64,000 nucleotides of DNA, taken from IMG/VR virus record IMGVR_UViG_3300021963_000023, positions 124,001 through 188,000 of that record; one strand, given 5' to 3'. Shown here in pieces: positions 11,961 to 50,924 of this stretch. The notes beneath the pieces were generated by a model that was given only the letters and a program-made list of their open reading frames with translations, had not been told where the DNA came from and did not search any database. Each line of letters opens with the position of its first letter. Position 1 is the stretch's first letter. A program made the position numbers and the translations under genes.

Positions 11961-11993
11961 ATATTCATTTTAGTATTGTTTATATTTATTGGT

Positions 11994-44150: not shown

Positions 44151-46487
44151 ATGAGCAATCCTTTTATAAAAGTTGAATGGGAAGACGTTTCGGAAAACTT
44201 TACACCGGAGCGCGTTAAGCGCGTTAAAACATACTTTCAAACAAAGTATAACACAACGCATGTACAAGTTATAACCAAAACGTTAAGCCAAAAGCAAGAC
44301 ACCAGACTTAAAACTCTAGAGGTTAGTGATAACATATTGGACAATCAGTTTCAAAAGAAATTAATGAAAGATTTCTTAACAGAGAATGATGTTCAAATTA
44401 AATGGGAACTAGTTGATAGATTAGATAATCGTGTTAATGCAGAAATAAATAAAGAAAATGAAAACAAAGTTAGATACAATAAGTGGTTTATTAAAAAAGT
44501 TGAATTCTCCAATTTTCTTTCCTTTGGTGATAATAACGCTATTGATTTTACAAGTCTGGGCGGGATTACGGTAATTGAATCTAATCCTAGAAACTTTGGT
44601 GGTAAGTCAACGTCTAGTGTTGATCTATTAATGTTTTTGTTTTTTAATTCAACAACCAAAACAAAAACTAACGCTGAGATTTTTAATAAATTTACTGATG
44701 TTGATACCGTGTCTGTTAAAGGATACATTACAATCGATGGAGATGAATATGTTATTGTTAGAACATTAACAAGAAAGAAATCAAGATCTGGTGATTATAC
44801 AGTTAAAAGTGAATTGGAATTCTTTAAAGAAAAAGAAGATGGTGAATTAGAAAATTTAACTGGAGAACAAAGAAGAGAGACCGAAACATTTATTGCATCA
44901 GCAATTGGAACAGAAGAAGATTTTTTATCTACTATTCTTACAACAGGATACAACCTAGAAGAACTTATAGAATCTAAACCAACAGCTAGAGGTCAAATTC
45001 TAACTAAATTTTTGGGATTAGAATCTTTAAAACAAAAAGAAGAGGTATGTAGAAACATCTATAATGACTGGGCCAAAAAATTAATTGGTAACACATATAA
45101 TGTTACTCAGTTACAAAATGACATTATCACCTATAATGAAAATATAGTTACTTCTAACAATGAAATAACAACGCATACTAGATTATTGGGTGAATATGGA
45201 ACTACACACAAACATTTAGAAGAGAGAAAAGAACACATCTTAGGATTAAGATCTAATGATATTGACCAGGAATTAATTAGAACCAATCCAGCGTCAGTAG
45301 AAAAAGAAATAGGTCAATTAAATTCCCTAAAAGCTTCTAGTCAACAAAACGCTGATGCCATTCTTATTGTAGAACCATCACAATACTACTTAGAGGCTGA
45401 TCATAAAACTGCTCAAAAAGAATTGAACGATTTATTGGTTGAAGGTAAGGTAACATTTGATAATATTGGTAGAAGCGAAAAATCTATTAAACAGTTCGAA
45501 GAAGGTAAAACCTGCCCAACATGTAATCGCGCATTAGATGAGGTTGATCATACTGAGGAAATTGCAAAACTTAGACAAGACATTGAAGATCTTAAGAAAA
45601 AACAAGACGAGTTAAAAGTTTCCGCTGATGAAGTGCAATCCAAGGTTACTGCGTTTAGTGTTCTTAAAGAGGAGTTTGATACTTACGAAAGAAATAAACT
45701 TCGTAAAGAGAGATATGAATTAGAAGTTGAGCAGAAACAAGTTGAGATAAACGCTAAACAACTTAAGTTAGACAACTATGAATCCAATCGAAAAAAATTA
45801 GAAGACAATCAAAAGATAGATACCGAATTGGTTACATTAAAAAGTCAGATAGAAAGTATAAATGGCGATATCAGAATTTCAAATACAACCATTGAGAGAA
45901 ATAAAAATAATATCACATCAATGGATGAAAAAATTGGTATTGCTAATGATCTAATTGCTAAAATTAAAGCTGAAGAAGAACTACAAGGTGTGTTTAAAAC
46001 ATATCTATTAGTTTATGGTAAGAATGGTATATCAAAAACAATCTTGAAGAATATGATACCGCTTATCAATCAGGAATTAAGTAGATTATTATCTGAAAGC
46101 TGTTACTTTATTTTAGAGCTGAACATTAATGATAAAAATGAGTTGGATTTCATAATGATTGACTCTGAAACAAGAATTATTAAACCATTGAACGCTGGAT
46201 CTGGCTATGAAAGAACAATCGCATCATTGGCATTAAGAAGCGTTTTAACGAAGGTTTCTTCTTTACCTAAGCCGAACATCGTTGTGATGGATGAAGTCTT
46301 TGGTAAGGTCGCAGATGAGAATCTAGAGATGGTTGGGGAGTTCTTCAAGAAGATCAAGAATTACTTTGAACATATCTTCGTTATTTCACATAACCCATTG
46401 ATTAGAAATTGGTCAGATAACCTGATTATGATTAAGAAAGAGGAAAACGTATCATCAATAGAATACATTTCCACCAAAATTTCTTAA
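44151..46487 (+). CDS. sbcC: SbcC/Rad50/gp46-like SMC ATPase with ~110-aa N-terminal extension
   Basis: EFSNFLSFG; Walker A NFGGKST; coiled coil with CPTC Zn hook; signature GSGYE; Walker B VMDEVF; ISH. Confidence 0.92.
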   Translation: MSNPFIKVEWEDVSENFTPERVKRVKTYFQTKYNTTHVQVITKTLSQKQDTRLKTLEVSDNILDNQFQKKLMKDFLTENDVQIKWELVDRLDNRVNAEINKENENKVRYNKWFIKKVEFSNFLSFGDNNAIDFTSLGGITVIESNPRNFGGKSTSSVDLLMFLFFNSTTKTKTNAEIFNKFTDVDTVSVKGYITIDGDEYVIVRTLTRKKSRSGDYTVKSELEFFKEKEDGELENLTGEQRRETETFIASAIGTEEDFLSTILTTGYNLEELIESKPTARGQILTKFLGLESLKQKEEVCRNIYNDWAKKLIGNTYNVTQLQNDIITYNENIVTSNNEITTHTRLLGEYGTTHKHLEERKEHILGLRSNDIDQELIRTNPASVEKEIGQLNSLKASSQQNADAILIVEPSQYYLEADHKTAQKELNDLLVEGKVTFDNIGRSEKSIKQFEEGKTCPTCNRALDEVDHTEEIAKLRQDIEDLKKKQDELKVSADEVQSKVTAFSVLKEEFDTYERNKLRKERYELEVEQKQVEINAKQLKLDNYESNRKKLEDNQKIDTELVTLKSQIESINGDIRISNTTIERNKNNITSMDEKIGIANDLIAKIKAEEELQGVFKTYLLVYGKNGISKTILKNMIPLINQELSRLLSESCYFILELNINDKNELDFIMIDSETRIIKPLNAGSGYERTIASLALRSVLTKVSSLPKPNIVVMDEVFGKVADENLEMVGEFFKKIKNYFEHIFVISHNPLIRNWSDNLIMIKKEENVSSIEYISTKIS

Positions 46488-46529
46488 TTTGAAAAACATT
46501 AATTATATTTGCTTAAACAATTAATAGAT

Positions 46530-47201
46530 ATGACACCTAAAGATTTAAATAGTTTTGGTCTATATGCTAAAGACCGTGGGATTAGTTCCCTTGATATGCA
46601 TTATTTTAATAAGAATGTAGAAAATAGTTTAACACCATATATTCTTGAAGAAAGAACTTTGAATGTTACTGTTATGGATGTATTCAGCCGATTGATGATG
46701 GAAAGAATTATATGGGTGGCCGGTGAAGTTAATGACCATATGTCTACGGTTGTGCAAGCTCAATTAATGTTTCTGGATAGTTTAGACAACAATGATATCA
46801 CTATACATATTGATAGCCCAGGTGGTTCTGTTAAATCAGGGTTATCTATGGTTGATGTCATGGAGTACATTAAATCTGATATTAGAACAATCAATACCGG
46901 TATGGCAGCATCAATGGGATCTATCCTATTAGGTGCAGGAACAAAAGGTAAACGCGGATCATTGAGATTTTCTAGAACGATGCTACATCAATCATCTGGT
47001 GGGTTTAGAGGAAATATTCAAGATGCCAAAATTGATATGGTAGAGTGGGAAAAATTAAATAATATTTTATTTGATTTGTTAGGTACTTATTGTGGTAAGA
47101 CCGGTGATCAAGTTAAACAAGATGCCACTAGAGACTTATGGTTAGATTCTCAAGACGCTTTATCATATGGAATCATTGATGAAATAGTTAAGAAGAAATA
47201 A
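46530..47201 (+). CDS. clpP: ATP-dependent Clp protease proteolytic subunit
   Basis: IDSPGG, GMAASMG (catalytic Ser), MLHQ (His), RD (Asp); N-terminal LTPYILEER..DVFSRLMMERII is Bacteroidota-like; ATG at 46530. Confidence 0.93.
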   Translation: MTPKDLNSFGLYAKDRGISSLDMHYFNKNVENSLTPYILEERTLNVTVMDVFSRLMMERIIWVAGEVNDHMSTVVQAQLMFLDSLDNNDITIHIDSPGGSVKSGLSMVDVMEYIKSDIRTINTGMAASMGSILLGAGTKGKRGSLRFSRTMLHQSSGGFRGNIQDAKIDMVEWEKLNNILFDLLGTYCGKTGDQVKQDATRDLWLDSQDALSYGIIDEIVKKK

Positions 47202-47230
47202 TAATTTTTTTATCTTCATTTTTTAGTCTG

Positions 47231-47262
47231 AGGGGAGTCTTAAAAAGGCTTCCCTTTTTTTT
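47231..47262 (+). terminator. Intrinsic terminator after clpP
   Basis: aggggagtctt/aaggcttccct stem + T run. Confidence 0.8.
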
Positions 47263-47284
47263 ATTTTATTCATATACTTATAAT

Positions 47285-47360
47285 AGACCTTGTGGTTGAA
47301 GTCGAAGTGTCCTTGAGGCATTTGAGTTGGAATTGATACCAACGAATTCGGGTTCAAATA
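47285..47360 (+). promoter_or_regulatory. Structured 5' leader RNA; first 15 nt complementary to 3' UTR at 48187-48201
   Basis: Hairpins gtgtc/ggcat, gttgg/ccaac and gaat/gttc; closing helix atttga/tcaaat; long-range complement agaccttgtggttga / ttaatcacaaggtct. Confidence 0.55.
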
Positions 47361-47378
47361 CAAAAAAATATAAGGAAA

Positions 47379-48182
47379 ATGAAAATAAGAATTTCAGCTA
47401 ACACTGGTCTATTCGCTACATCATTAGCAAGACCAGAGTCTTACATTACCAAGGGTAAAAAAAGACTTAAACAAAACACAGATACCGTTTATCTTAAAAA
47501 CGGGGATGAGTTCGAAATCGAACTTTACAATCCCACACAAAATAAAGTTTTAGCAAAAATCGAGTTGAATGGTAATTCCATTGGTAATGGTATTATACTT
47601 CGTCCTGGTGAACGTGTATTCCTAGAAAGGTACTTGGATGAGGCAAAGAAGTTTTTGTTCGACACGTATGTTGTAAACGGGGATAATAATGAAGTACAAC
47701 AAGCTATCGCCAACAATGGTGACGTTGTTATTAAATTCTATGATGAGGTAAAGATATCAACATATAATATTAATAGCGGTACCATAACACTTAATAACCC
47801 AAATTTTGGTTGGGGAAGTACAACAACTGGTAGTCCATGGTATGGTAATTCAACATTTACAACGTCAGGAACAAACGTGTATTATAATTCCACATTAACA
47901 AGTGGTACTAATTCATTTTTTAATAATGATAATAAAATAAAGAAATCATCAAGACAAGTTGAAACTGGTAGGGTGGAAAAAGGGATGGATTCAAGCCAAT
48001 CCTTTACGTATGATAATTCATCATTTAATACGTACCCATTGGCCACCAATTGGTGGAAAATTAAGCCAGAATCAACTAAGTTAAAAACCATAGAAGATTT
48101 GATCACATATTGCGGGGAATGCGGCAGTAAAAAGAAAAAAGATAACCATAAGTTTTGTCCACATTGCGGGTCAAAATTCTAA
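47379..48182 (+). CDS. Hypothetical protein: beta-rich N-domain, S/T/N linker, C-terminal Zn ribbon
   Basis: VYLKNGDEFEIELYNP...LRPGERVFLERY domain; C-terminal CGECG...FCPHCG. Confidence 0.8.
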   Translation: MKIRISANTGLFATSLARPESYITKGKKRLKQNTDTVYLKNGDEFEIELYNPTQNKVLAKIELNGNSIGNGIILRPGERVFLERYLDEAKKFLFDTYVVNGDNNEVQQAIANNGDVVIKFYDEVKISTYNINSGTITLNNPNFGWGSTTTGSPWYGNSTFTTSGTNVYYNSTLTSGTNSFFNNDNKIKKSSRQVETGRVEKGMDSSQSFTYDNSSFNTYPLATNWWKIKPESTKLKTIEDLITYCGECGSKKKKDNHKFCPHCGSKF

Positions 48183-48207
48183 TAAATTAATCACAAGGTC
48201 TTACTTT

Positions 48208-48232
48208 GAGGTCGCTTTTCGCGACCTCTTTG
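48208..48232 (+). terminator. Intrinsic terminator
   Basis: gaggtcgc/gcgacctc perfect stem followed by tttg. Confidence 0.75.
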
Positions 48233-48253
48233 TATTTATAGTAAAAGATAAAC

Positions 48254-48592
48254 ATGAAGACCAACAAAACAAACATTTTATTAGTATTAATAGCTTGTTT
48301 AGCGGCATATAGTATTTTCCAAGGAAGTAAGATTAGAACCGATGTAGCCGGATATAATACTAAAATTGATTCGCTTCAAACTCAAATTGACTCAGTTCAG
48401 ATAGTCAATGAAAAATTAACTGAACAAATTTTTACTATTGATAAGGAGATCGATAAAGTAGATGCCAATGTCAATAATGTAACTAAAAACATAACTATTA
48501 TTAAAAACCAAACAAATGAAAAAATTGATTCTGTTAGCAATTATAACTTTAGTGACCTTGAAAAGTTTTTCACAGACCGTTACAAAAACTAA
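48254..48592 (+). CDS. N-terminal TM + coiled-coil protein (i-spanin-like)
   Basis: Single TM then heptad coiled coil; TATTTATA upstream; overlaps next gene by 77 nt. Confidence 0.55.
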   Translation: MKTNKTNILLVLIACLAAYSIFQGSKIRTDVAGYNTKIDSLQTQIDSVQIVNEKLTEQIFTIDKEIDKVDANVNNVTKNITIIKNQTNEKIDSVSNYNFSDLEKFFTDRYKN

Positions 48593-50111: not shown

Positions 50112-50924
50112 ATGAAAAAGTCTGCACCCATCGTTAAAACTGAAGAAATTCAGTACTACCTAAAGGATTTAAAGAGAATCCCTGTCATCTCTCACGAAAG
50201 AGAGTATGAAATTTTTAAAAGCTTAAAAGAAGACAAGGGTCTGAGTAAGACGGATCGACAGAAATTAATTGATGAGGTTATTACTGGTAACTTACGTTTT
50301 GTTATATCGGTGGCTAAAACATATCAGAATCAAGGATTAGATATTGGTGATTTAATATCTGAAGGTAATATTGGTTTAATAAAAGCAATTGAAAGATATG
50401 ATCTAACATCTGGATTTAAATTTATTTCATATGCGGTGTGGTGGATTAAACAACAGATATTATATTCATTAAATGAGTACTCAAGAACTATTAGAGTACC
50501 GTCTAATGTAATTCAAGATGCACAAAAAGCTAAAAAAATTGATGCTAAAGATGAGGACAAATATTTTATTGAATATTCTCAGGTTGCATTAACGGGTATC
50601 CCAACAACAATAGATTTATTCAGAGAAATAAATGAAGATGGTGACACATTAATAGAGATGATCGCCAACCCTAATTCTGAAATGCCAGATGCTATTGCGA
50701 ATAGTGCTGAAGATCTTAAGCATAGAATAAAGTATATGATGTCTTTTCTAGATGAAAGAGAACGGGCTATTATTGATGGTTATTTTGGACTACTTGGTAG
50801 TGAAAAAAATCTAGAAGATCTAGGTGAAGAGTTTGGTTGTACTAAAGAAAGAATTAGACAATTGAAGGATAAAGCAATAAAAAAACTTAGAAACGAGAGC
50901 TTTTCTCTCCTAAAATATTTATAA
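50112..50924 (+). CDS. RNA polymerase sigma factor, sigma-70 family (RpoD/RpoS-like)
   Basis: Region 1.2 (YYLKDL), region 2 NLRFVISVAK...GDLISEGNIGLIKAIERYD...FISYAVWWIKQ, region 4 LEDLGEEFGCTKERIRQL. Confidence 0.92.
   Translation: MKKSAPIVKTEEIQYYLKDLKRIPVISHEREYEIFKSLKEDKGLSKTDRQKLIDEVITGNLRFVISVAKTYQNQGLDIGDLISEGNIGLIKAIERYDLTSGFKFISYAVWWIKQQILYSLNEYSRTIRVPSNVIQDAQKAKKIDAKDEDKYFIEYSQVALTGIPTTIDLFREINEDGDTLIEMIANPNSEMPDAIANSAEDLKHRIKYMMSFLDERERAIIDGYFGLLGSEKNLEDLGEEFGCTKERIRQLKDKAIKKLRNESFSLLKYL

Follow-up and report, generated by a model that had tools for sequence, protein, structure and literature searches.

Hundreds of uncultivated large freshwater phages carry a conserved gene whose predicted messenger RNA pairs its first bases with a stretch just after its stop codon and carries a three-armed fold in its leader. 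A 9- to 19-bp helix between the 5' and 3' flanks exceeds chance in at least 69 of the 91 distinct homologous loci that we compared. The RNA element matches no Rfam family and, by inference from its architecture, probably protects or gates the message. We identified it in a 64,000-nt stretch (hereafter the window), corresponding to positions 124,001 to 188,000 of a 251-kb IMG/VR viral contig (IMGVR_UViG_3300021963_000023). An earlier note, made from the sequence alone, had described complementary ends, a structured leader, flanking terminators, and a beta-rich protein with a C-terminal CxxC..CxxC ribbon. The complementarity that it reported is present and confirmed by comparison with relatives. 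The unit comprises the following features:

47230..47256 (+), terminator-like hairpin (12 pairs followed by a T run) of the upstream ClpP-like gene (46509-47201; Pfam PF00574, E 2.5e-55), bounding the unit on the left
47273..47280 (+), promoter-like motif TATACTTA, 4 nt upstream of the first paired base, with a predicted transcription start at about 47285
47285..47299 (+), 5' arm of the long-range helix P0, AGACCTTGTGGTTGA; the conserved core is 47286-47296 and the inner 3 nt overlap P1
47297..47356 (+), three-way-junction leader: P1, 47297-47300 and 47302-47306 with 47347-47351 and 47353-47356; P2, hairpin 47307-47321; J2/3, UUGA at 47322-47325; P3, hairpin 47326-47343; J3/1, GAA at 47344-47346
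47357..47378 (+), A-rich linker with the SD-like UAUAAGG at 47369-47375, which can also pair with CCUUGUG of the 5' arm
47379..48182 (+), ORF of 267 aa with a predicted beta-sandwich core, a disordered loop, and a C-terminal CxxC...CxxC zinc ribbon
48187..48201 (+), 3' arm of P0, TTAATCACAAGGTCT, beginning 4 nt after the stop codon, which is part of a tandem TAA TAA
48208..48236 (+), intrinsic-terminator-like hairpin (48208-48228; 8 pairs, 6 of them G-C) with a U-rich tail, the predicted 3' end of the transcript

A conserved helix between the 5' and 3' flanks

The two 15-nt arms pair through 13 Watson-Crick and 2 G.U pairs. Taken alone, this pairing is not beyond chance: 54 of 100 shuffled sequences gave at least two matches to a 15-mer with up to three mismatches, and the pair is one of many 13-nt, 92% inverted repeats in 2.5 kb. 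However, it ranks first among the flank pairings of 56 ORFs in the window (score 33, next 26, median 17), and it is therefore not a general feature of the genes of this phage. In a thermodynamic fold of the whole predicted 952-nt transcript, P0 belongs to the minimum-free-energy structure, with pair probabilities of about 1.0 for nt 2-10.

Chance is ruled out by conservation and covariation, the comparative test that the earlier note had proposed. Successive IMG/VR scans gave 17, then 80 (of 291 confirmed), then 59 phage loci. After removal of duplicates, 91 loci had both flanks, with 38-100% protein identity to the window. Many relatives lie on contigs of 100-400 kb. The 16 other loci of the first search (protein identity 45-81%) all keep both arms at the same places, although their upstream and downstream genes differ. 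Among the 91 loci, the best ungapped helix between the region upstream of the start and the 75 nt after the stop exceeds the 99th percentile of shuffled 3' flanks in 69, and most of the remainder have shorter helices (9-10 bp) at the same position. The helix is most often 12-14 bp long and begins mostly 5-12 nt after the stop codon. P0 is nevertheless dispensable for some relatives: one clade (loci L130, L131, L146, L148, and L162 in our numbering) and the loci L135 and L165 keep the leader fold but show no convincing 3' arm.

The arm sequences are almost invariant within the window's own clade but differ wholesale between at least six clades:

Clade A: 5' arm GACCUUGUGGUU, 3' arm AAUCACAAGGUC
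Clade B: 5' arm AAAGCCUCGUGUGGC, 3' arm GCCACACGAGGCUUU
Clade C: 5' arm GGAACCUCGU, 3' arm ACGAGGUUCC
Clade C: 5' arm GGAACCUCAC, 3' arm GUGAGGUUCC
Clade D: 5' arm GAGCCUCGCUCU, 3' arm AGAGCGAGGCUC
Clade E: 5' arm GAAACACCCAUAAC, 3' arm GUUAUGGGUGUUUC
Clade F: 5' arm AGCCUGGCA, 3' arm UGUCAGGCU

Each 5' flank pairs well only with the 3' flanks of its own clade, with scores of 23-36, whereas pairing between clades falls to background (13-24). Within the helices, non-Watson-Crick positions flanked by pairs are 32 G.U (13 distinct classes) and 1 U.G, and none is A.C or C.A. As a DNA-level repeat should show both kinds equally, and an RNA from the opposite strand should show A.C, this identifies an RNA helix on the sense strand. 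We also considered that the arms might be terminal repeats of a mobile gene cassette or paired sites for a DNA-binding protein, as the unit sits in different gene neighborhoods in different phages and repeats recognized by one protein would also covary. We rejected this reading as very unlikely on the strand bias of the mismatches. Furthermore, the arms keep a fixed register with the promoter-like motif, the stop codon, and the terminator, and the leader is far more conserved than the coding sequence, which does not fit recent mobility.

The boundaries of the transcript are predicted from sequence patterns. A motif of the form TAnnYTT[AT] (TATACTTA in the window, TATATTTA in many relatives) precedes the 5' arm in all clades, although the upstream genes differ. 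Of 84 helices, 70 have such a motif upstream, and in 47 of these the first paired base lies 4-5 nt after it. The same motif is found 13-21 nt before the ORF starts at 11981, 22265, and 49607. It resembles the -7 element of Bacteroidota promoters, in agreement with the scarcity of SD-like motifs in the window (6 of 52 ORFs) and with the A-rich, G-poor sequence upstream of start codons. The helix would thus be flush with the 5' end. In some loci, however, it extends 3-7 nt upstream of the predicted start, which reflects either chance pairing in A/T-rich sequence or a 5' end made by processing. In clades A, C, and F, a hairpin followed by a U run comes 1-9 nt after the 3' arm, whereas clades B, D, and E have none. 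On these patterns, the unit, with a predicted 94-nt leader and a short 3' UTR, resembles a moron-like autonomous transcription unit, with its own promoter-like motif and terminator around a single gene found in varying genomic contexts.

Direct evidence for transcription is thin. Short Logan contigs assembled from four freshwater metatranscriptomes cover 47301-48197, inside the predicted transcript, and nothing bridges into the neighboring genes. These runs were selected with this gene, depth is about 2-10, the contigs could include DNA, no single piece spans the unit, and no pile-up of contig beginnings or ends was seen. Two public contigs of roughly 1 kb encoding relatives (L159 and L160) do not start or end at the predicted transcript ends: L159 begins inside the leader and L160 includes the upstream terminator.

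The leader and the encoded protein

An alignment of 53 distinct leaders, folded with RNAalifold, gives a three-way junction directly next to the 5' arm, with a conserved UUGA(G) between P2 and P3. A covariance model of this fold finds exactly one copy in the window (E 2.7e-21) and matches 57 of 67 loci at E<=0.01, including the leaders of clades B, C, D, and F. With filters off, it gives weak matches at the homologous place in clade E and the L130 clade. On the model-fitted alignment, 98.7% of cells pair and 16 of 19 pairs show changes on both sides, whereas partners slid by 1-3 columns pair in only 35-44% of cells. Although this alignment is fitted to the structure, the alignment made with MAFFT alone already showed compensatory changes in 15 of 26 predicted pairs.

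Two of the leader hairpins proposed in the earlier note, gtgtc/ggcat and gttgg/ccaac, correspond to the covarying helices P2 and P3. Its third element, gaat/gttc closed by atttga/tcaaat, is not the conserved fold: 77.7% of cells pair and only one pair shows a double change. The conserved closing helix is P1. The hairpin that the note placed in the first codons (47404-47436) exists in the window (z = -3.1) but is absent at that place in relatives.

In agreement with the note, which could assign no known RNA family, Rfam gave no match at gathering score in the whole window, and at E<=10 on 47200-48300 only chance-level hits outside the leader fold. The strand order of the junction is that of a type III hammerhead, but the catalytic core CUGANGA/GAAA is absent, the junctions reading UUGA(G) and GAA in all clades. 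Three-way junctions with conserved junction nucleotides also occur in riboswitches, in which a conserved ligand-binding fold is coupled to an expression platform (a terminator or an SD-sequestering alternative). Here, no expression platform is evident, no ligand can be inferred, and the partially supported alternative pairing described below does not involve the junction.

The protein has more than 2247 homologous clusters in the large protein collection, none with an informative functional name, and 1502 representative clusters at E<=0.001. The genome collection holds the gene only on metagenome-assembled contigs that look like binned phage DNA, giving no host assignment. Pfam hits of the window protein are below threshold, but 102 of 116 relatives hit Zn_Ribbon_1 at E<=0.01. 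Pfam and PHROGs give only the zinc ribbon, and a PDB sequence-profile search finds only zinc-ribbon tails. An AlphaFold2 model from 14 sequences was too poor to use (pLDDT 51.8), whereas 116 sequences gave a confident one (mean pLDDT 84.6). It predicts a beta-sandwich core built from residues 20-125, 193-204, and 222-230, a disordered N/S/T/G-rich loop of about 60 residues (about 130-190), and a C-terminal zinc ribbon with a lysine-rich insert. Foldseek finds no PDB chain matching the fold (best E 0.23). Searches of BFVD and the ESM Atlas return only uncharacterized viral proteins. The BFVD matches are a phage paralogue with SHOCT in place of the ribbon (E 2.8e-19) and proteins of giant viruses, iridoviruses, nudiviruses, baculoviruses, and nimaviruses (E 6e-9 to 1e-3, TM 0.24-0.50).

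These data bear on the possibility that the protein, with its zinc ribbon and lysine-rich tail, binds the three-way junction or the P0/P1 stack of its own mRNA and represses or times its translation, as do phage T4 gp32 and ribosomal-protein leaders. The leader is specific to this one gene and coinherited with it across all clades, its junction nucleotides are conserved beyond what pairing requires, and the zinc ribbon weakly resembles RNA-binding zinc-ribbon proteins of ribosomes (E 0.02-1). However, there is no evidence that the protein binds nucleic acid, the core fold has no PDB match, and a sister family lacks the ribbon. Autoregulation is only a tentative alternative.

Possible roles of the paired ends

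Comparative analysis establishes the covarying sense-strand helix between the start of the leader and the start of the 3' UTR, and the covarying three-way junction specific to this gene; promoter use, the transcript ends, any effect on decay or translation, and the function are inferred. The interpretation of the earlier note is partly supported: an RNA helix joining the two ends of a predicted monocistronic mRNA and a structured leader of no known family are supported by comparison of homologous loci, whereas its functional proposals (RNase III-type processing, circularization, autoregulation, a dedicated RNA-protein module) remain hypotheses. Circularization is unlikely, because a terminator hairpin lies beyond the 3' arm in most loci.

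We consider protection of the 5' end and marking of the full-length message the most likely role, although with no more than even confidence. In this view, P0 buries the 5' terminus in a helix that can form only once the 3' UTR has been made. Full-length messages would be shielded from 5'-end-dependent or leader-directed ribonucleases while their start region stays open, resulting in a long-lived, well-translated mRNA. In known 5' stabilizers, a helix flush with the 5' end is the feature that matters. The three-way junction is a separate module that must have a role of its own, because it persists in relatives lacking a convincing P0, and it may be a protein-binding or ribosome-recruiting element.

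[quoted passage not shown] In the phage unit, the 5' arm lies at the predicted 5' terminus and not inside the leader, the support comes from wide covariation and not from mutagenesis, and the host is probably a Bacteroidota-type bacterium. In Staphylococcus aureus, pairing of the 5' and 3' regions of icaR mRNA and RNAIII affects translation, delaying that of hld in RNAIII (PMC3868564; PMC7821165). The icaR 3' UTR carries an anti-SD that blocks the ribosome binding site and creates an RNase III site, and so represses; here, the 3' arm is SD-like and pairs with an anti-SD-like 5' end, so that if anything it would derepress. In the 5'-terminal stem-loops of ompA, ermC, and phage SP82, a helix at or within a few nt of the 5' end blocks 5'-end-dependent decay, but these are local hairpins, whereas the partner strand here lies about 900 nt away, after the stop codon. 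In flaviviruses, influenza viruses, and bunyaviruses, conserved complementary terminal sequences also bracket the coding region; those are genomic RNAs whose panhandles serve replication or promoter function, whereas this is a predicted mRNA of a DNA phage with a terminator hairpin beyond the 3' arm.

P0 might alternatively be a processing stem cut by RNase III to release or mature the mRNA from longer transcripts, like the stems flanking ribosomal RNAs. It is a long-range helix bracketing a whole gene, it abuts P1 with no spacer on the 5' strand, it extends upstream of the predicted start in some loci, and clades B and E have no separate terminator after the 3' arm. However, RNase III substrates need about two turns (around 20 bp) of near-continuous double-stranded RNA, for which P0 alone is short; about 22 bp are reached only if it stacks on P1. 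The promoter-like motif immediately upstream with fixed spacing, and the upstream terminator present in many loci, argue for a primary 5' end. We regard this reading as unlikely.

A third partner is also possible. On the leader alignment, RNAalifold pairs CCUUGUG of the 5' arm with the SD-like UAUAAGG just upstream of the AUG. This pairing could block initiation on the nascent RNA until the 3' arm, with its longer complement, captures the 5' arm and frees the start region. Across 56 distinct leaders, 90% of these cells pair, against 40-52% in slid controls, and three of seven pairs change on both sides, although most of the 90% reflects invariant columns within one large clade. In clade B, the 5' arm, the 3' arm, and the pre-AUG segment changed together (CCUCGUG, CACGAGG, ACGAGA). 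The sequestered fold is within 1.1 kcal/mol of the leader's minimum free energy, and the 3' arm duplex is far stronger (-21.3 against -6.8 kcal/mol). A recent preprint shows that anti-SD-like sequences can act on ribosome binding sites over hundreds of nt in B. subtilis (PMC12697547), and SD-like motifs are rare in this genome. Conversely, clades D and E have P0 but no complementarity between the arm and the pre-AUG region, and in the window's leader-only ensemble the SD-like bases are still about 50-80% unpaired. This start-region gate is a doubtful, minority hypothesis. Equally doubtful, though not excluded, is its extension to a three-partner switch, in which translation would start only on completed transcripts, with stop and start codons held side by side in a bacterial closed loop; in clade B, the same helix, followed by a U run, might even act as the terminator stem. 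Autoregulation, the gate, and RNase III processing are not mutually exclusive. A subclade-specific antiterminator, in which the 5' arm would pair with the 5' half of the terminator, was rejected because the terminators are unrelated between subclades.

The review that we consulted describes only three bacterial mRNAs with pairing between their two ends, hbs, icaR, and RNAIII (PMC7821165), and we found none described in a phage. In this unit, natural variation across many phage lineages already supplies the compensatory-mutation evidence, and the helix sits at the predicted 5' terminus and directly after the stop codon. It offers a compact system for asking how end-to-end pairing affects mRNA decay and translation, a question made sharper by the likely hosts, which make little use of Shine-Dalgarno pairing. 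The leader motif could be added to RNA family databases, and it flags for study a very widespread, uncharacterized phage protein whose predicted fold recurs in uncharacterized proteins of giant and other large DNA viruses.

Possible alternative pairings and variation of the long-range helix

Within the leader, the junction UUGA is identical to the outer 5' strand of the closing helix P1, and both can pair with the UCAA of the P1 3' strand. The segments concerned in the window are as follows:
47297-47300, outer 5' strand of P1
47322-47325, junction UUGA
47353-47356, UCAA of the P1 3' strand
The inner 3 nt of the 15-bp long-range helix (P0) also overlap P1. Alternative conformers are possible around the P0/P1 boundary.

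In the homologous loci of clade B (L100-L113), no hairpin terminator follows the 3' arm. Instead, at about 5-40 nt after the stop codon, the strong 15-18 bp long-range helix is followed directly by a U-rich run and then by the next promoter-like motif. The long-range helix itself might serve as a terminator stem. The relatives L130, L131, L146, L148, L162, L165, and L135 keep the three-way-junction leader but have no convincing 3' arm, and in the L130 clade a terminator follows the stop codon directly.

Predicted fold and distribution of the encoded protein

The predicted fold of the protein encoded at 47379-48182 matches only uncharacterised proteins of giant viruses, iridoviruses (ICP-18), nudiviruses, baculoviruses (P22.2), and white spot syndrome virus (wsv390). 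A phage sister family carries SHOCT in place of the zinc ribbon. A fold shared between phages and large eukaryotic DNA viruses may deserve a study of its own. In the genome collection, the only hits are metagenome-assembled contigs. The very large ones, L164 (a 254-kb contig binned as Bacteroidetes) and L165 (a 425-kb contig binned as Pacearchaeota), are probably jumbo-phage contigs placed in cellular bins.

Promoter-like motifs, start regions, and neighbouring genes

A promoter-like motif, TATA[CT]TTAT or TATTTATA, recurs 13-21 nt before ORF starts (window 11981, 22265, 47273, and 49607; also 48233-48240). It looks like a Bacteroidota-type -7 element and implies very short leaders for most genes, against 94 nt for the gene described here. 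Among the 52 ORFs of the whole window, only 6 have an SD-like 4-mer upstream, and G is depleted and A enriched before start codons. The well-spaced UAAGGA before 47379 is exceptional in this genome.

Three neighbouring genes of the window encode the following products:
44151-46487, an SbcC/Rad50-like ATPase (weak Pfam hit)
46509-47201, a ClpP-family protease
50112-50924, a sigma-70-family factor (regions 2 and 4)
The sigma factor may read the phage's own promoters.
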